Origin: Bugula neritina
Lineage: Eukaryota > Animalia > Bryozoa
Direction: 5' to 3'
Assembly: GCA_964035545.1 (NCBI GenBank)
Contig: OZ037773.1
Span: 7,841,751-7,905,750 of the forward strand
DNA: 64,000 nucleotides
Made by a program: the position numbers and the translations under genes. A model generated the notes under the pieces. The model ran no database searches and had not been told where the DNA came from. It was given only the letters and a program-made list of their open reading frames with translations. Below are positions 33,891 through 64,000 of the stretch, piece by piece. Positions within the stretch are counted from its first letter, which is position 1, and every line of letters begins with the position of its first letter.

Positions 33891-35082
33891 TCTGAAATAT
33901 GAAATTAGCTGAAAATTTCTATTTGTGTAGAGAAAAGGGGAATGTTTTTGCTGGATCAAACTTTGCTTCTGGAAAAAAGCACTTTTTTATAAAGCTCGTT
34001 AAAATAAATTGTTCCAACTTTTGTAAGTGAAATCCACTTATATAGCCTAATAAAAAAAATGTTGCAAGTTATAAAAGATAAATGATTCACCACCTTCTTT
34101 ACTACCTTAGTTTCTTTAAAAGGAGGTAATTGTTTAGAGCATAGCCAGACATGGTTTAGTAGGAATTTATTCTCCACTTACCCATCTAACTGGAGATAAT
34201 CTATGGCAGTATTAGCCTGTGAGACTGACTTTAGGATTAGCCTGAGACAATAACTCCAACATACTGCAAGGTTATACATTAGATTATATATTGAAACCTT
34301 CTTCTTAACATACATATGCTATCTGACTATATTAAACATGCATTAATATAGAAACTTATGACTGCAAGGAAATATCACAACAATCTATCACAAACTCATA
34401 ACCCTTCATTCAACTCTAACTAATATTATTCAATAATGTATTGGTATTACTAGCAACATCAGGGAATAACATTCATAAAACTGAGTAGTTTAACACCGGA
34501 TAATTCAAATAAACATTGGCAGACAGTGTGATAACTCACCTAGGTTTAGAAAAAAATTTGTAAAAACAAAACAGAAACTAGAAAATTTACCTTCCAATGT
34601 ATTTGGAATATGTGGAGGTTCAACGTCATAACTAAAAATTACCAAATAAAAATGTAGACAATATGCTTTCATAAATATTAAATTAAAAAAGACTGCATTG
34701 TTTTTATAACTAATTCATATCATAATTTTGGAGCATCCTATTTTACACCTATTTAATGTATAAAGCCATGCAACCTGTGAAATAATTGAGTCCGACAATA
34801 TTGCATCAGAATAGTATCTGCTTTTGTTAAAAAGTTGTAAAAAGTTATAGCTTAAATAGTTAAATTTACTTACAAATATCCTATAAACCTTTGCAGAACT
34901 GACTCGGGTTTCTCAACACGGAAACATTTATCTGTAATTATAACATAAAGGCATTTAATAATTTAAGTTATGGTAAAAGCTTTTAGTTTCTCATATGCAT
35001 AGCATGTGCTATAAATAGAATTCTAGAAATGGTCAGACTGCATGCTACACTCTCTCAATTTGTGCATAAATAATATATATAT

Positions 35083-35540
35083 TATATATTTAGTATTGCT
35101 ACTTCATACTCTATTGGATATAACAAACTTATTTACTCAAATGACTACAAATTTGCTTTGCGTAGTATGAACTTTGCCTATCAGGTCGTTATGGTCGGGT
35201 GATTTTGTTTTGGAATTTATAATGTTTGTGTATTGCTACGCGGGTTTCTTCGCAATTGGCGTCTCCTAAATGCGCAAGCAAAAATTGTCCTTTGTGCTTG
35301 CGTGCCAGCAAGTGCATTGCGTAATCCTAAAACAACCGGAGTTATTCTCCCTCAACATGCAGGACATTTTGCTTGCGGATTGAGGAGACGCCAATTTAGA
35401 AACTCGCGTAGCAATACACAAACAGTATAAATTCCCTAACAAAATCGCTCGACCATACTACACGAAACAAATAATTTGCAGTCATTTAAATGAGTAAATA
35501 AGTTTATTAACTCCAATATAGTATCAATACTAAATATAAA
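35083..35540. mobile_element. Foldback/MITE-like element with ~200-bp imperfect inverted arms (copy 1)
   Basis: tgtttgtgtattgctacgcg..ggcgtctcctaaatgcgcaagcaaaa is inverted relative to ttttgcttgcggattgaggagacgcc..cgcgtagcaatacacaaaca. Confidence 0.7.
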
Positions 35541-36739
35541 TACTCTATCTTTTCGAAATATTGAATTCTCTTAATTCAGTTTTTAATCATAGAAACTATA
35601 TAATATACTTTACATAATACAGTTGTCACTCAATAGCTCTTAGCTATGGGATAGATTAGTACTAGAATAAATATTTAAAAATACTGCAGATACACTCATT
35701 GACTATTGCTACTGAAGTTAGTATTATATTAACATGCTTCACACAGCAAGTCTTTACCACAAACCTGCAGAATCATACTTTGTAACAATAACAGTTATAA
35801 ACTATGGCAAGTATAATAACCAACAAAAGTAAATCCTAACTATATAGTCTTTATAATGAGAACTCGACTGAAAATACCTGCTTGCTGAGATGAGTCAGTG
35901 CATATGTCACTCACATTAGTAAATATAAATTACTATAATAATATGATGACTACGACCCATCTACCTTGGATAACATTAGAATATGTTGTAGTTGTTTAAC
36001 GTTGTAGTATAATGAAAATATAGCTTACCCAATTCTTCAAGGTTTAGTATGCTGTTCAAAATACAGAACAGGTGAGTTAATAATACAGAGAAATCCATAT
36101 TAATATTACATTTAAATCAATATAATCATAGCAATACAGTACAAGTTAAGATAAAATCTTCTAGCTGTGTACACAAATATGCTGCAAGTGAAGTGGGCAA
36201 CAATGGTTTTTAGAATCAACATTGAGTTTAAGTTATTTACGTTCATCTTCAACAATCATATTATATTCATATATTAGAATTATTATAGAAATATTTGATA
36301 GCATAAAACTTATATATTAATTTAAATTTTTAGCTGTAATGCCTAGTTAAATAATATTTTATTGAACAAATTCATATATTTTTACATAGCAATATTTTTA
36401 TCACACATGCGGCCATGAATATTTGAATGTTAGCCGATTGCTGGGCAATTTATTTGCCAAATACTTACTAAAAGCATAATATCATTATATATAGCAAAGG
36501 GAAATTTCAAAATTTTATTGCACATTTCAAAATTATCTATTTATGAAAATTAGAATTAGAAATTATAAGGAATTACAATAAATATATAGACTTCTTTGAG
36601 TTTTTATAAATATATCTTATTGGAAAACTTCATTCTATCGCCTGCTCTATTAAATACAACAAATTTAATTGTTAAGGTAAGAATTAGTGTTTTAACTGAT
36701 AGGCTACCTGTACAACTTTATGTGCCTCCTGTTTCATTC

Positions 36740-54452: not shown

Positions 54453-55642
54453 TCTGAAATATAAAGCTGATAATTTGTATTTGTGTAGAGAAAAGGAGAG
54501 TGTTTTTGTTGGGTCAAACGTTGCTTCTGAAAAAAGTATTTTTCTTTAAAACTTGCTAAAATAATTGTTCCAACTTTTTCGAGTTACATCCGATTTTACA
54601 ATAAACAAAAATATTGCAAGCTACAAGATAAATAGTTTAGCATCTTTTTGACTACTTTAGTTTCTTTAAAAGGAGGTAATTGTTTAGAGCATAACCAGAT
54701 ATGGTTTAGTAGAAATTTATTCTCCACTTACCCATCTAACTGGAGATAATCTATGGCAGTATTAGCCTGTGAGCCTGTTTTTAGGATTAGCCTGAGACAA
54801 TAACTCCAACATACTGCAAGGTTATACATCAGATTATAGATTAAAACCTGCACATGCTAGCTGAGTATAAATTAGACCGGCATTAGTATAGAAATTCGTG
54901 ACTGCAAGGAAATATCACAAAAATCTATCACAGACTCATAACCCTTCATTCAACTCTAACTAATATTATGCAATAATGTATTGGTATTACTAGCAACATC
55001 AGAGAATAACATTCATAAAACTAAGTTAGTTTAACACAGGATAATTCAAATAAACATTGGCAGACAGTGTGATAACTCATGTGGGTTTAGAAAAAAAATT
55101 GTAAAAACAAAACAGAAACTAGAAAATTTACCTTCCAATGCATTTGGAATATGTGGAGGTTCAACATCATAACTAAAAATTACCAAATAAAAAATGTAGA
55201 CAATATGCTTTCATAAATATTAAATTAAAAAAGACTGCGTTGTTTTTATAACCAATTTACATCATAATTTTGGAGCATCCTATTTTACACCTATTTAATA
55301 TATAAAACCATGCAACCTGTGAAATAATTGAGTCCTACAATATTGCATCAGAATAGTATCTGCTTTTGTTAAAAAGTTGTAAAAAATTATAGCTGATGCC
55401 AATGTACACATATTTATAGTTAAATTTACTTACAAATATCCTATAAACCTTTGCAGAACTGACTTGGGTTTCTCAACACGGAAACATTTATCTGTAATTA
55501 TAACATAAAGGCATTAATAGTTTAAGTTATGGTAAAAGCTTTCAGTTTCTCATATGCATAGAATGTGCTATAAATAGAATTCTAGAAATGGACAAACTGC
55601 ATGTTACACTCTCTTAACTTGTGCATAAATAATGTATATATT

Positions 55643-56130
55643 ATATATTTAGTATTGATACTTCATACTATATCGAATATAACAAACTTATTTACTCATT
55701 TAAAATTATGACTACAAATTTGCTTCGCGTAGTATGAACCTTGCCCATCAGGTCGTTATGGTCGGGTGATTTTGTTTTAGAATTTATATTGTTTGTGTAT
55801 TGCTACGCGAGTTTCTCCGTAATGAGCGTCTCCTAAATGCGCAAGCAAAAATATTTCTTTTGTGCTTACGCGTGCTAATAAGTGCTTCACGTAACCTTAC
55901 AACAACTGGAGTTATCCTCCCCCAACATGCGTGACATTTTGCTTGCGCATTTAGGAGACGCCAATTAAGAATATCGCGTAGCAATACACAAACAAAATAA
56001 ATTCCCAAACAAAATCACCCGACCATAACGACCTTTTGATAGTAGTTTATACTACACGAAACAAATAATTTGCAGTTATTTAAATGAGTAAATAAGTTTA
56101 TTATATCCAATATATTATTAATACTAAATA
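55643..56130. mobile_element. Foldback/MITE-like element (copy 2)
   Basis: Paralog of 35083-35540 with long inverted arms. Confidence 0.7.
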
Positions 56131-56902
56131 TAAATACTCTATCTTTTCGAAATGTTGAGTTCTCTTAATTCAGTTTTTTATCATAGAAACTATATATACT
56201 TTACATAATATAGTTGTGACTCAATAGCTCTTAGCTATGCTATAGATTAGTACTAGCATAAATATTTAAAAATACTGCAGATACACTCATTGACCATTGC
56301 TACTGAAATTAGTATTATATTAACATGCTTCACACAGCAAGTCTTTACCACAAGCCTGCAGAATCATACTTTATAACAGTAGCAGTTATAAACTATGGCA
56401 AGTATAATAACCAACAAAAGTAAATCCTAACTATATAGTCTTTATAATGAGAACTAGACTGAAAATACCTGCTTGCTGAGATGAGTCAGTGCATATGTCA
56501 CTCACATTAATAAATATAAATTACTATAATAATATTATGATGACTATACGACACATCTACGTTGAATAGCATTAGAATATATTGTAGTTGTTTAACGTTG
56601 TAGTATAATGAAAATATAGCTTACCCAATTCTTCAAGGTTTAGTATGCTGTTCAAAATACAGAACAGATGAGTTAATAATACAGAGAAATCCATATTAAT
56701 ATTACATTTACATCAATATAATCATAGCAATACAGTACAAGTTAAGATAAAATCTTCTAGCTGTGTACACAAATATGCTGCAAGTGAAGTGGGCAACAAT
56801 GGTTTTTAGAATCAACATTGAGTTTAAGTTATTTACGTTCATCTTCAACAATCATATTATATTCATATATATAAATTGTTGTAGAAATATTATATTGTAG
56901 AA

Positions 56903-56980
56903 ATATATATAAAATATAATTTATACAATAATAAATTATATATATAATTTATTATTGTATAAATTATATTTTATATATAT
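56903..56980. repeat. Perfect 78-bp AT-rich palindrome
   Basis: Arm atatatataaaatataatttatacaataataaattatat followed directly by its reverse complement; centre at 56941/56942. Confidence 0.9.
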
Positions 56981-58024
56981 ATTTTATTATATATATATAT
57001 ATTTTTTTTTTATTATTATATAAAATATTTTTATCAAGTTAATAATTGTTTACCTTATTTAAAATTTGGACACAAGGCCAATTATATAATTGCATCATTT
57101 CACAGTCCACTTTCTTTAAAGTCAAATGTAATTATATAAAATAAAAAAGTAAAGCATTAAGAGAGAAAAGAGACAGTGCAAGAAATTGCCCATCAGGCAA
57201 GCAATGTTCTATATTTTCAAATTGTTGAAAAAAGTGTTTACTTTAATTCGCTGAGCACTAAAATGTTTTAATGGTGATGCCAGCCAGGCCTATTGAATTT
57301 TAAAGAGCTTGAAGTAACACTAGTAATTATTTTAGCCATGAAAATAATAGCATTGCAAAATTCATACATTAAATGCTGTTGGTTCATATTTGACTACCCA
57401 AGCTGAGTCTTCTAGCTGCATGAGTATCTCCCTGTACATTCATACAGGCTTTAGCTTTATAATAGCTTCTTTGTGACTTTATTTTACAAGAAAGAAAGTT
57501 TAGGCAAGTATGTTTATTTGTATAAAACTAAAAAAATGCAAAAACAATTTTGTAGTGACATATTGTTGTTCATACATGTAATTATCAGCTTTTCTCTTGT
57601 GCTTATGTAATTGAGTTTATAAACTATAGAGCTTATAGCAGTAGCATATTATACCTATTATAGTTAGAATCAGAAATGAATAATTCAAGGATGGGCAACT
57701 CCAAGGGCTCACTTAAAATTTGAATTGTTCGTGAGTAACATCTCATATATAACTTATATCTCAACTGCATTTTAGCAATAATTAGCACCATATAGCATTA
57801 AATATTAAGTTTAACTTATATAGTTTGCTGAGAGTTGAAAACAAAAAACATATCATTTTAGCTTTCGGAAACATTAAACAATATTAGATTAGATTCATGG
57901 CAAGGTATATGATAAAAGTTAAAATGCGATAATATGTTCAATATCAATAGAATTATAAACCAATTATGATACACTTCAACTCAAGGAGCTTATGGCATAA
58001 GGAGGTAGGAGATAGTGTCCTTTA

Positions 58025-60377
58025 TCATTCAACACCAGGATGATTAGCGCCAGAATCATCAACACGAGCGTCAACACGAGCGTCAACACGAATATCAACA
58101 CGGATAAGAACTCTTATCCTGATTCTAATCCTGGGCCATCTTATACGTCTTTTCACAATCTCTACAAAGAATCTCACATAGTTATGCAGGCTGTCAAAAT
58201 ACTGGAACAAAATAGAATATTAAAATATGTGTGTTGTTACAAACTTTATTGCACAGTGATGTGATGCATAATAAGGGTCAACATCTATATATGCTTTAAG
58301 AAACTGATTTGTTTGTTTACAATGTTTTCGATTATAGTTTTTCAAACAAATAAAGGATAAGAAAGAAATAATCCAGTTACAGCTTTTTGTAAAGCAATTT
58401 CCCATTTTATTTTGCACAACAAAACACCAAGTATAGTCTGAGTACAATACAAGTTTGTGTTCATTTAAAGCTCACTCATACGTACGTAATTTCTTATGCT
58501 AGAATTTCTTATCAGTTCTTGAGAAGAAAACCTCAAAATTTATTGTGCATATTTCAGTAAAAAAATGTTTTATAATTTCAGCTACTTTACTAAAAAATGT
58601 GCAACTTCAACTCAACTTAGTATGAATAGAGTGCTGAATTTACCACGTGATAAATTCTATTCTTAAACAAAATGCATATAAGATTTCTTTGACACGTGCA
58701 GTATACCACAATAACTTTAGAGAACAAATTATGTATGCCACATAACTTTATAATACTAAATAAGGAAAGAACTTCTTACCATGACCAGAGTTTGCTGTCC
58801 GCTGACCAATAGTTATCCACTGATAGCCATTGAAGCAGAAGGACTCGGCCTCAGCTGATATGAAACTGGTATCAGAGACCTTCCCAGGATGCAGTCACAG
58901 AGGTGAGGTGAGAATCTGCTGTCACTTTGACCTGCTGACCTTTGAAATGCCTTCTGAGTAGTTGACTATCGGCAGCAGAGAGTGTAGACGGTAGGAGGTA
59001 GCAGATACCAGTGGTAGTGTCTTTGGTTATGTGTAGTCCCTAAACATATATTATATAGAGGTATAAATACTAGCATTGTTTAATTACTTCCTATGAGAGT
59101 GAAGCATACCAATACAAATCTTTTTTAAAAAATATTTTTGCCTTTTTGGATGTTTTCAATTAACAAATATATTATTAAAATCACAGAACATTATTTATTT
59201 TTTTGATAAAAAGCTTCCATGCAATTTTAACAAAATACCTAAAAATTATATTTTTTAAAACCTGAATTTTACAGTATGTGTCAGGCACAGTATATGTATG
59301 CATATGCTAATCTACTAAATGATTAAATTTGTTTTTTAATACTTGTAAATTAAAATTTTGATTCCTTTATTATGTTTCTTTACAATAAAAAGTAGGCACT
59401 ACATTTACGAAACATATTTCCTTAGAATATTTTTCACAAATGATGCAAAAAAATTATTTTGGCATAAATTCAATGACATCATTTTATTATAACTCTAAAG
59501 TTATAATAAAACAAATGAGATGTAGGTAAATGATTATAGCCATGCATAGTATTTAATAACGTGAAATTATTTTATCCATGCAGATGCCTAGTCTGAATTA
59601 CTCAGTCCTTGAGTAATGATAAATTTACCTTTCCATAATCTTCCAGATCAAAACCTCCATCTTTAGTAGTTAAAACCGCAACATTTTCTTTACTGTTGTA
59701 TGCAAGCTGTACATCAGGTTTGTTGGCCTGCAATTACGAAACTGTTAGGTTTTAGAAAAATAAATTGCTAGATTGGAATAATTCATAAACATTGATCAGC
59801 CTAAAACTGAAAGTGTATATATAATACAATGACGAATTTATATGATATAACATAAAATACATATAACATGGCATGCAGTATAATGACATAATATAAAATG
59901 TATCTAATATAATGACTAAACCAAGAATTTATAATAAAAGTATTATGCTAACAACTATGGGAGCAGCCATGGTCTAGGGGTTAGAGCATCCAGTCATAAT
60001 TACTCCTGTGCCACATCTGAATAAGTCCTTAGCCCGTTTTAACAAAAAACCCTTTCATCAGGGTTTCTCACAGGGATAGTAACTATAAACTTGCGTGAGT
60101 TTATTATAGGCTAACAACTAGAACAGTAATTTAAACAACAATTAAATGCTGTAGACTGGTCAGGAGAATTAGCTTAAATTTGTATGATTTTACTCACCAC
60201 ATGAATTGTCTCCCCATAGTCTGGAGGTCCTGTCAGTTTCTGAGTACAACCAGCTATAGGATTTAAGGCTGTGTATATAATGACACCTACAGTAGCTGTC
60301 AGTAGAACTGCCAGTACGAGAGTAATCATAGCAAGCACCTGCCATCTGCCTGTCACTTTAGATTTATATTCTTCATG
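58025..60377 (-). CDS. BRICHOS-domain-like type II membrane precursor with C-terminal Arg-rich peptide; frameshifted at ~58895 in this assembly, start codon unresolved
   Basis: Exons 60377-60198 (TM VLAMITLVLAVLLTATVGVIIYTAL), 59727-59629 (..EDYGK), 59039-58780 (GLHITKDTTTGICYL ... KVSDTSFISAEAESFC..W), 58161-58025 (EIVKR-RIRWPRIRIRIRV...). The Asp/Cys/Cys pattern fits BRICHOS. Confidence 0.65.
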
Positions 60378-63300
60378 CTAAATCAACATAATTGTTTTTA
60401 AACTATAGCTAAGTCCTCAACTGCAGCAAGATGTATTCAAAACTATAGTTTTAGTATACTAATTGCAGTGCCAATGTAAAAGCTTCTTTAGTCTGGTAGA
60501 TGTTTTTATACCGTAGGCAACTCCTTGTACAACTGTACTAAAATTTATATAAATAAAAACATATTTAAATTTTGAAATATAATAACTTTATTTATAAACC
60601 ACACATCTCTACCACTAGTATAGTTTGGTTTGATGTTTGTTTGAGCTATCTTATTCAATAATTAAAATGGGTCTGGTTTGATGGTTCTATATGTAGCAAC
60701 TCTAGATTAAAGCTTTTGTGTTGCTAGTTCGGGAGTTACCTCCCTAAGAATAAAATTGCACATTTTTTTGTAGTATATAGACTTTATATGTGCAATCTAT
60801 CTAATGATACTATATATAAAGAAAAAAATTTGCGCCAATAATAAAAGTCGTTACAATAATAAAACCAAACAGATGTTAATAACAAAAACCTGTGATTGTT
60901 TGCTGTGCTTGTTATTCTGATAACCAATGTACAAAGTCATAGAATAATACTAATAAATACTACTATTTTAAAATAATTTTTAAATTAATAAGGCTCAAAT
61001 AGATTAGAAAGTTTAAAAACAAAAATTCCTAGTTTCTTCAAATTTCAAGCATGAAATTTTTGTAGCTTTGTTCAAATTCTCAATAATCCTTGTATAGTGA
61101 CCTTGAAAATATTATTTTACAAAAATTAGTCAAATATAATACAATTGGAATATTGTAATTCCTATTTTTCAGAAATATTATTTAATGTTAGGTTACTTAC
61201 TTTACTGCAGCTGTTTAGCTGTTTTATGGTTTCCTGATATCTACTATTGTGCAATCAAATCTGAAGAATACTGTGGGTGCTGTTAAAAATTCTACTTATT
61301 TTATAGTTGTTATTTTGGCAAAGTTTCAAAGATCTTGATGACTTTAAAGATAACTGACAGATTCAATAGATGGTGCAAAGCTCAGCCAATCAGGGATGTT
61401 TACCAACTTTAAAATCACGCCATTATAACTTTTATGAACATCTCCAAGCTCAATTAAAAAAGAGCATGCTTGTAAAAATAGTTGCACACCTTTTGCTACC
61501 GTGCATTATTTCATTTCATATCTTATATTTATGAGTTTTGAAATAATCTTTTTTTCAAAGTCTCTACATTAAATGTTACAAAATTATTATTAAAATTTGC
61601 ATGTCTGCCAAAAGAATAGCTGCATGATAGAATTTCACCACAGCTCCAGCTGTTGCTGCATAACATTCTTTATAGTTTTATGGTGAATGAGTTGGTTTCC
61701 TGACAGTTGAGACCTGGAGAGAACTAAAGTTTTCGTCTGACTCTAATTGGCTAAATTTCACATGACTTGATATTTGCATCTAATGTGCTTGACAGTTTAT
61801 GATTATGATATAGGGTTACTGGGTAGTTAAAAAGAACTAGTATTGTAAACATATATTATTACAACACTTATAGGCTGTGGTACAATTGTAGTATGTATAG
61901 CTGGCATATTCCAGGGTTGCCTATATGTGCATAGATGGTGTTCACTGTATTTGACTATTTATATGTTTTGCTCAATACAAAGCATTATTTAACTTGAAAA
62001 TATTCAGCCCGTATGGTAACTTTAAATACATGGCAACCAACCATTAGATTTGATAATAGTTTCATGAATTTGCCTAATGGAACTATGGAACCTGCATGCT
62101 ATAAAGAAAAGGCTAACCCTGAACTATTAGCTAAAAATCATAACAGAGGCATTGTATTTCAAGACTTTAGCAGCTTACAACAATGCATGTCACTAACTAA
62201 ACATTATCTATTAACTGCCATCTTGTTTTGCCTAAACTTATTGCCAAAAATCAATGAGGCAAGCTCATCGAAGCACTAAAACTTGTATATGAGTTAGATT
62301 GGTGTATAGTATGTATATATTGTATTGTTTACTAGTTAATTATATTCCTAATATTGAAGTTGAATTGGTGTATCATTTATAACAATTTTTACATAAAAAT
62401 GCATGTAGTAAAAATTTTAGCATACCTTTGCAATATCTCTAATGTTTAAACTTACAGCAAAAAGTTGATTTGACTGAATTCATTTTAAGTTGGACATGCT
62501 ACTCAACATGTTAAATTGATAATTATAACTATCATTGGTGTCATCAAAAAGCCTATATTAAACTATAGTGATATAGTATATCTGCAAATCATAATGCATA
62601 TTCATTGATTATAGATTAACATTAATTTTTATCTACAACAATATTGCTAATCTAGACCATAGGTTTCTTTGTCTCTCTATTACTGCACACGCTTCACGCT
62701 CTCACAATTTTGATGGATAGGTCATACCAACATTTTTTGTTGTGTGGAAAGCTTTGGGTACAACTGTTAGACAGTATAAATGAAAGTATTAGACAGTAAT
62801 CCAGTGCATTTCAAATATTATGCTAAAAAGTTTTTTCAATATTTTGTCAATGTGTGCAAGGTTCTTTTGGAGTTTATAATTGATAGAGGCTTAAAAATAT
62901 TTCAAGCAGTCTAATCAGATATTTACATTTTAATAAGTGTTTGTTGCTCAACCCTATGAGGAAATGACAATAACCAGACCACCCCATTGAGTAGACAGAA
63001 GTGGTAGCCACATGGAAGTGCAAATAGCTGCTAAATCTGTTAAGCAGTTGGTTATCTCTGGTCAACTAACAAAATGCTAAATAGGTAACTTAGTGCAATA
63101 TTGGTTAAACTCATGTTGTTCTCTGTTATACTGTGAGAACCTACATGTTTATGATAACTTTAACATTTGTAAAAGTTTATATTTTGTTAAAAGAAGGTTG
63201 ATCGGGTGCACTGACACATGAAGCCTTTGTCTAACACTTTCAACAAATCTCATAAGTGTTGATGTATAATACAAAGAGAAATCTGAAATGTGTAACATTC

Positions 63301-64000
63301 TTAGTTTCTTAAAGCTCCATTTGTAAGCTTGTAAGCTCCAAAAGTTTTTCACTTTTCTTTTATACTAAAGTTTAAGCTGATTTGTTTATATAGTTGATTA
63401 CGGGCTTGTCGATACAGAATTAAGCTTTAAGAAAGTTTATTCAAAGTACTAAAAAATTTGAATATATATAAATGAAGTAAACAATTTTCTACATTGCATC
63501 ATACTTCAGAAAACGTTACCATCTAAGAACTTTAAGTGTCGCGGCATATGTTTGCTAGCAATCAGATCTTTAATAAACTGAAACATGCAAATTTATGTAC
63601 AATTTGCACTGCCAAACCTGTTGATGTATGTCCTAGCAATTATACTATTAGATATTAGGTAAATGTAGCTGTACTGAATTAGTTATGCTTATTTAATTTT
63701 GCTCAAAGCAACTGTTGGATTATTATAGTTAATGGAAGCATAATTAATTACTAAGAATGTAGCAATATGATATCATGAAAAGTAATTATTGTTTACTAAG
63801 ATAGCATAATATATATTTTCAGTGCTATCATCTCCTATAGCAACAATTTGCACAGAGTTTGCATTTCTTATTTCTTATTTAGATGATATAGATATAATAA
63901 ATAAAAGTTTACATCGTATATAACTCTAGTTTATATGCATTTTGTAACAAGGAAAAGTCAAGAGAGTTAAAAATGTATAAAACATAAAAATTTACTTGCT

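Follow-up and report, generated by a model that had tools for sequence, protein, structure and literature searches.

The window analysed here is a 64,000-nt stretch of bryozoan genomic DNA, and positions without further label refer to it; the comparison copies at L017 and L018 come from the Bugula neritina draft genome GCA_010799875.2 (hereafter the B. neritina draft). Between 58025 and 60377 its minus strand carries four exons with canonical splice sites (Table 1), whose spliced layout, consisting of a membrane anchor, a linker, a BRICHOS-like domain, a dibasic site and a short beta-prone cysteine-free cationic peptide, matches that of a BRICHOS-type precursor. The exons, the motifs, the Lys-Arg site and the 40-residue Arg-rich tail all lie where a preliminary description of this DNA had placed them. 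Exon 1 is the counterpart of exon 1 in two intact genes, the annotated B. neritina gene P0064 and copy 2 of L018, and exon 3 also encodes DTSFISAEAESFCFNGYQW (the DTSFI..FCFNGYQW region). The sequence E-I-V-K-R is encoded across the 58780/58161 junction and is followed by the tail, which has no Cys, 10 Arg and a net charge of +4. Exon 4 occurs just once in the 216-Mb window genome.

Table 1 Features of the BRICHOS-like precursor locus in the window.
Feature	Position	Strand	Content
TATA-like box	60501..60512	-	GGTATAAAAACA; retained upstream of the deletion; same motif upstream of exon 0 in L017 copy B
178-bp deletion junction	60483..60484	-	took the 5' untranslated region, exon 0 (start codon) and the beginning of intron 0
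Exon 1 splice sites	acceptor AG 60378-60379; donor GT 60196-60197	-	canonical
Exon 1	60198..60377	-	short basic cytoplasmic stretch and signal-anchor helix (..GRWQVLAMITLVLAVLLTATVGVIIYTAL..), hydrophobic anchor of ~23 residues
High-copy interspersed repeat, ~150 bp	59955..60104		in intron 1, outside the gene product
Exon 2	59629..59727	-	linker and beginning of the BRICHOS-like domain; ends ..GGFDLEDYGK, holds the candidate conserved Asp
Exon 3	58780..59039	-	BRICHOS-like domain, core part; GICY (GICYLLP) has the first Cys, SFCFNGYQW the second
Exon 4	58025..58161	-	E-I-V-K-R dibasic site, 40-codon Cys-free Arg-rich tail (58028-58147), stop TGA (58025-58027)
12-bp tandem array, (RVDx) units	58059..58102	-	TRF: period 12, 3.7 copies, 90% matches

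The gene carries two lesions, one of which lies in the core of the domain. Exon 3 measures 260 nt in the window versus 262 nt in intact relatives, two nucleotides (TG) being absent between 58891 and 58892 (window ACTG--CATCC, relatives ACTGTGCATCC or ACTGTACATCC). The upstream frame reads ..SHLTSVTASWEGL (..TASWEGL) and meets a stop at 58872-58874, six codons past the frameshift, and the downstream half of the exon (HPGKVSDTSF..) lies in a different frame. Exon 3 is thus not one open frame, a point that the preliminary description had touched on only in passing, with its mention of a "frame-corrected protein". We compared the lesion with six homologous copies (two paralogs on contig C3 and one on contig C2 of the window genome, and three copies from the B. 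neritina draft): all six are continuous there, and five read TGTG or TGTA, the C2 paralog (L004) being compared on the protein level only. The only public run containing the stretch is genomic DNA; its contigs match the assembly over 57914-58888 and 58862-59653 with no differences and no gaps, and its depth is even across introns (~125). Since these contigs carry the same sequence, the frameshift is not a consensus error. The sequence that separates the upstream in-frame stop from the downstream frame contains no AG acceptor, and the exon 3 frame is hence not rescuable by a simple alternative acceptor. The premature stop lies 92 nt ahead of the last exon junction (58780). Under the 50-55-nt rule, a premature stop farther upstream of the last junction exposes an mRNA to nonsense-mediated decay, and an mRNA from the window copy would be exposed in this way.

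The other lesion removed the beginning of the gene. Positions 13088-13265 of L017 are without counterpart in the window, and both flanks align at 87-91%. The deleted exon 0 encodes MDGKGLK in the copy compared (L017 copy B), an exon of the type MDxKDLK; consistently, P0064 as annotated begins MDSKDLK, then HEENKS..., and the two C3 paralogs and the B. neritina draft loci likewise have a small exon 0, ending at a GT donor, some 210-230 bp upstream from exon 1. A search for an MDxKD exon in window positions 60380-64000 found none. The TATA-like box that is retained beyond the deletion may be a promoter element. The ATG at 60376, previously taken for the start codon, opens a 7-codon out-of-frame open reading frame (MKNINLK-stop), and its position is that of the exon 1 splice acceptor in relatives. 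An in-frame TAG before exon 1 was considered as a nonsense mutation and rejected, since P0064 shows the exon 1 splice acceptor there. A start codon followed by one open frame over all exons, as expected of a functional gene, was not found in the window copy. With the start exon deleted and the frame closed midway through the domain by the 2-nt loss, the Arg-rich tail and the (RVDx) array of this copy are most likely not translated, and normal translation is blocked in the very copy that had been put forward as the source of the peptide.

An intact ortholog was identified as copy 2 of two tandem copies on B. neritina contig VXIV02002239.1 (L018). It is colinear with the window both upstream (window 64000-62919) and downstream (58046-55202), and its five exons are all open and bounded by canonical splice sites. 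Exon 2 has no amino-acid difference from that of the window (NCBI model P0030 reads the same exon 2), and the reading frame and stop codon of exon 4 are common to the two copies: exon 4 of the ortholog encodes E-L-V-K-R and then RIRWFSRIRIRIRILIRVDIHVNHPRVE, ending at the window's stop codon. V-K-R-R stands before a cationic tail in both (+4 in the window, +6 in the ortholog). The ratio of nonsynonymous to synonymous substitution (dN/dS, Nei-Gojobori, small counts) was 0.35 for exons 1-3 and 0.2 for those codons of exon 4 that both copies have, values that indicate purifying selection for most of the time since the two diverged, and a loss in the window lineage that is recent. The window copy belongs to a real, selected bryozoan gene family. 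Over aligned blocks, mostly non-coding, the window is ~83-91% identical to the B. neritina draft, and the two genomes are therefore not from the same taxon.

Several irregularities were seen in the draft loci and around the gene. NCBI models EB796_015075 (P0030), EB796_024973 (P0003) and EB796_024972 (P0065) are mis-spliced (L018 16512-18779; L017 6001-9254), with the first half of exon 3 skipped, the cargo exon missed or a neighbouring gene fused; P0030 is mis-spliced into the adjacent gene at L018. L017 shows four frame-breaking 1-nt gaps in exons 1, 3 and 4, all at doubled bases, and its second copy is without exons 2-3. These gaps and missing exons may be draft errors or mark a decayed haplotype, and the gaps were not counted as evidence of a pseudogene. 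In the window, 34076-36403 and 54626-56970 both match L018 19731-22083, downstream of the gene, at 84-90% identity, which points to a segmental duplication inside the window. The interspersed repeat in intron 1 reaches a summed contig depth of up to ~670,000, versus ~125 for its flanks, and was checked for a tRNA and is not one. By block coordinates, intron 1 of the window exceeds that of L018 copy 2 by ~200 bp across this repeat, which is probably an insertion.

The cargo itself consists of two parts with different histories. The preliminary description had seen RADA-like (RVDx)4 repeats in the tail, encoded by a 12-bp tandem, and the tandem was confirmed by TRF. The pattern is present, in 3.7 units, but it is not conserved: the ortholog cargo, of 28 residues, opens with RIRW, continues as an alternation of Arg and Ile and contains one RVD unit only. 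Relative to the ortholog, 3 nt are lost from exon 4 of the window and 39 nt are added in frame, the latter being exactly the tandem array; both B. neritina draft copies lack the array and show a 39-nt in-frame gap in its place. With just one RVD unit in the ortholog, and 39 nt fewer at this place, the array reads as a recent, lineage-specific, in-frame microsatellite-type expansion of a 12-bp unit. Repeated units kept by selection, as in a self-assembling RADA16-like peptide, are not what the draft copies show. The alternating Arg/Ile strand, unlike the array, is conserved between window and ortholog, and the cargo of this pair is amphipathic as well as strongly cationic. The hydrophobic moment of the window tail at 180 degrees (beta-type) exceeded that of shuffled sequences (p ~0.002), as it did for the cargo peptides (p ~0.001-0.002).

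A search with a profile of exon 3 translations (HMMER) gathered 29 proteins. The closest are Bugula neritina KAF6016716 and KAF6026626, with EB796_015074 and EB796_003392 closest by word search, and the more distant are "uncharacterized proteins" of ~250 residues from Watersipora subatra. These relatives place the window in a bugulid bryozoan. Every full-length member has a transmembrane anchor, a linker, the conserved domain, K-R and a short C-terminal cargo, and this architecture was found in the window exons and in P0064, P0063, P0006 and P0010. The large multi-stretch matches P0005, P0015, P0026 and P0028, which are LRR/NACHT, prealbumin-like or unassigned proteins, were discarded as spurious. 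Only members of the family came back from a word-index profile search, and none of them linked it to canonical BRICHOS proteins.

Paralogs with variable C-termini, for which a search had been proposed, were present, and their cargo differs completely from member to member. Two intact tandem five-exon paralogs with canonical splice sites lie on contig C3 of the window genome, at 22515159-22517546 (L020) and 22521236-22523364 (L016); after I-V-K-R their cargo reads RIKWPKITITIKITIRF and RIKWPKIKITITITIRF, 17 Cys-free residues in which Ile alternates with Thr/Lys. Their B. neritina orthologs are two tandem genes of 209 residues (P0064, L019), so that the C3 paralogs and P0064 share 17-mers of the type xIKWPKI(K/T)ITI(T/K)ITI... 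The cargo of P0063 is a 17-mer ending in a V/I run (net charge -1), that of the C2 paralog, with its two candidate last exons, forms mixed-charge alternating strands of D/E/K, and that of the Watersipora homologs is Cys-rich, aromatic and acidic. Across the other paralogs the net charge of the cargo ranges from -1 to +5, and the combination of a dibasic site with a cationic peptide holds for the ortholog group of the window but not across the family. Ile, Val and Thr make up 29-65% of the measured Bugula cargo peptides.

The distant C2 paralog (29414049-29416622; L014 8049-8225; L004 2101-2154 and 2329-2382) has two candidate last exons in succession, both preceded by a pyrimidine tract and an AG, which encode ..VKR-KADVTIEIKLIIKK and ..EKR-KADVSIEIKIVVKF and may be alternative or duplicated cargo exons. 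Its intron 2 contains a long minisatellite, and a partial inverted copy of the gene lies ~8 kb away (L005). The first half of exon 3 recurs as seven degenerate fragments, on both strands and all with stop codons, which are spread over 250 kb of contig C5 (8.13-8.37 Mb; L006-L012) and look like decayed or repeat-carried copies. The Watersipora subatra proteins P0006, P0047, P0010, P0048 and P0046 share the transmembrane-domain-KR layout, with a cargo of 45-58 residues that is Cys-rich and aromatic or acidic. In P0046 (481 residues) one model contains two such precursor units, through fusion of gene models or as a genuine tandem precursor.

Several lines of evidence bear on the identity of the conserved domain. 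Pfam family PF04089 (BRICHOS) was the commonest and the only recurrent family, in 5 of the 28 members scanned, with a best E value of 4.6e-4 and alignments spanning most of the profile (positions 9-86 of 91): P0004 scored 20.8 bits (E 4.6e-4), P0021 18.6, P0008 17.2 and P0063 14.6 bits (profile positions 9-84). The Pfam check proposed beforehand thus gave recurrent matches in relatives and left the gathering score of 25 bits unreached, full-length relatives scoring 12-21 bits. UniRef labels P0063 and P0064 "BRICHOS domain-containing protein" (Bugula neritina). As a lead only, the top ESM feature neighbour of exon 3 is a BRICHOS cluster (score 0.89); the ten best family-bearing neighbours all share family or clan with it, and among the matches listed the first three and rows 4-5 carry PF04089. 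A shape search of the Atlas with the P0064 model ranked two ITM2/BRICHOS clusters on top (TM 0.46-0.47, 144 residues). In BRICHOS domains an Asp close to the start of the domain is conserved, as are two Cys, which a disulfide joins between the sheet and helix 2 (PMC10182729, PMC9627735). Consistently, the family has two conserved Cys motifs, the first G-x-C-Y and the second x-C-x-x-G-Y-Q-W (its Cys invariant in alignment A3 and nearly so in A4), and a candidate Asp in FDLEDYGK, matched by VDDF or FDDL in Watersipora; this Asp would be equivalent to that of BRICHOS, and the two Cys would form the disulfide. The BRICHOS fold is a central beta-sheet with two flanking helices. In the AF2 models, which are poor overall, the predicted elements follow the order beta-beta-alpha-beta-alpha-beta; a strand contains the first Cys and helix 2 the second, the arrangement described for BRICHOS (PMC10182729). 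We therefore consider it probable that the domain is a divergent lineage of BRICHOS.

By analogy with Bri2 and the polychaete peptides, we propose the following route for the intact precursor. It would be a type II protein with a short cytoplasmic N-terminus, a signal-anchor helix, a linker, the divergent BRICHOS-like domain, K-R(-R) and a Cys-free peptide, the cargo being a strict alternation of Arg with Ile/Val. After co-translational insertion into the membrane, the lumenal BRICHOS domain might act as a chaperone, shielding the beta-prone peptide from aggregation or from damaging membranes during secretion. A furin-like convertase would then cleave at the dibasic K-R(-R), and the cationic amphipathic beta-strand so freed might act on microbial membranes.

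Taken as a whole, these data make it likely that the window holds the single genomic copy of one member of a bryozoan BRICHOS-like precursor family, recently disabled (a pseudogene or a null allele), whose intact form is a five-exon precursor of an alternating-Arg peptide. Some observations weigh against it. Exon 4 is still open, without decay. The B. neritina models P0063 and P0030 start at an internal Met of exon 1, so the loss of exon 0 alone need not disable the gene. The DNA run may derive from the assembly's own sample, in which case it is silent on intact alleles in the population. The disabled status is read from genomic DNA. At the level of the domain, no family member reaches the Pfam gathering score, the AF2 models of P0006 and P0064 are poor (mean pLDDT 56 and 60, with 72-90 in core blocks), and Foldseek against the PDB returned nothing. 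The cargo of other family members is non-cationic (net charge -1 to +2), and an antimicrobial role would accordingly not be family-wide. A gene that still functions, starting at the internal Met at 60329 and making the 40-residue (RVDx)4 peptide, with the frameshift an error or confined to one allele, would account for the open exon 4 with its conserved KR site and stop codon, the dN/dS below 1, the internal starts of the two B. neritina models and the preserved TATA-like box. We regard it as improbable: the DNA-run contigs share the 2-nt loss, none having an indel there, an AG acceptor is lacking from the sequence that separates the upstream stop from the downstream frame, the loss of exon 0 leaves three ATGs ahead of the internal Met, and the position of the premature stop would expose the transcript to decay.

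The nature of the domain and the role of the peptide raise separate alternatives. An unrelated bryozoan-specific fold that happens to share a few motifs with BRICHOS would fit the sub-threshold Pfam scores and the empty searches: PF04089 matched neither the exon pieces from the window nor the translated exon 3 of the C3 and C2 paralogs, a six-frame genome-wide scan missed the family loci and returned one unrelated weak match, and sequence searches of the PDB, by single sequence and by profile, were as empty as Foldseek. The single-exon Pfam scans, for their part, came out empty because the pieces are too short; the fold search with VIA was swamped by the transmembrane helix, and cargo pLDDT was ~35 and uninformative on docking to the domain. 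Low sequence conservation is already known for BRICHOS (PMC9627735), it was the sole recurrent Pfam family, over nearly the whole profile, independent feature and shape searches each placed BRICHOS or ITM2 first, and the architecture and the placement of the two Cys fit, which leaves an unrelated fold with little probability. More serious is the view that the family is real and its peptides are not antimicrobial, being beta segments with another role (structural or adhesive self-assembly, signalling, or simply a BRICHOS client) of which the Arg-rich form is one variant. The hypervariable cargo is not always cationic (-1 in P0063, mixed-charge in C2, acidic, aromatic and Cys-rich in Watersipora), its shared trait is a beta-prone composition, and BRICHOS proteins in general bear amyloid-prone regions of varied function (PMC10182729). 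The ortholog pair studied here, by contrast, is strongly cationic and amphipathic and stands close to antimicrobials of the (IRIK)2 type (PMC4330034) and to the Cys-free HfBRI-20/-23, and a conserved pro-domain with fast-changing cargo has been reported for preproalvinellacin (PMC5431198). A non-antimicrobial role for the whole family is less probable than not in our judgement, and it stays a serious rival because other members carry uncharged or acidic cargo.

With the window copy preferred as a recently disabled member of this family, the value of the locus is mostly corrective: the RADA-like repeat lacks conservation and belongs to a copy that is disabled, and peptide synthesis is better based on the intact B. 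neritina ortholog or on the C3 paralogs than on the 40-mer. If the intact relatives are expressed and processed as proposed above, BRICHOS-delivered peptides for host defence or self-assembly would come from bryozoans as well as from polychaetes, and the alternating Arg/Ile and Ile/Thr cargo would offer natural test cases for how BRICHOS handles an extreme beta-former. A bolder picture, which we put forward as rather doubtful, is that bryozoans hold a fast-evolving, undescribed family of membrane-anchored BRICHOS precursors whose convertase-released, Cys-free cargo with a strict two-residue period (Arg/Ile; Ile/Thr/Lys; D/E/K with Ile/Val) forms natural counterparts of designed beta-sheet antimicrobials and self-assemblers, each with its own anti-amyloid chaperone, the (RVDx)n form perhaps being expressed from intact alleles in the population. 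In the literature searched, no link between BRICHOS and bryozoans (or Bugula) was found beyond passing mentions in reviews.

Among known systems, ITM2B/Bri2 resembles the bryozoan precursors in its type II topology, its linker and BRICHOS domain, and a convertase cut directly ahead of a short C-terminal peptide that is beta-prone, and ITM2 clusters are the best shape matches to the P0064 model. It differs in that sequence similarity is not detectable and that Bri23, the peptide released by furin, is not a cationic alternating one; the bryozoan proteins are also shorter (~186-250 residues). Two designed systems resemble the cargo in pattern only. Peptides of the (IRIK)2-NH2 or IK8 type (PMC4330034) show the same alternation of cationic and beta-branched residues as RIRIRIR[VI]LIRV. 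The RVDI/RVDA units share with RADA16 the order plus-hydrophobe-minus-hydrophobe, but the RVDx array is not conserved, with one unit in the ortholog, and sits in a disabled gene.

A further close parallel lies in the polychaete precursors (arenicin, alvinellacin, capitellacin, nicomicin and above all HfBRI-20/-23 and HfBRI-28), which have the same anchor or signal, BRICHOS pro-domain, Lys/Arg-Arg site and short cationic C-terminal peptide, and in which, as in the bryozoan family, the cargo varies far more than the pro-domain. The bryozoan domain differs in being too divergent for the Pfam threshold, its predicted cargo alternates Arg and Ile strictly before a short acidic/His tail, and the window copy itself is broken. 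A Cys-free cargo had been presented as unusual for BRICHOS precursors, a view that is outdated: in Heteromastus filiformis, HfBRI-20/-23 are Cys-free amphiphilic beta peptides that their authors liken to (VR)n repeats, HfBRI-28 is likewise Cys-free, and five HfBRI precursors are membrane-anchored (PMC10745061, 2023). Cys-free BRICHOS-related peptides with membrane-anchored precursors were thus already known from a polychaete, and what is new here is the phylum, Bryozoa, and the strict two-residue periodicity of the cargo.

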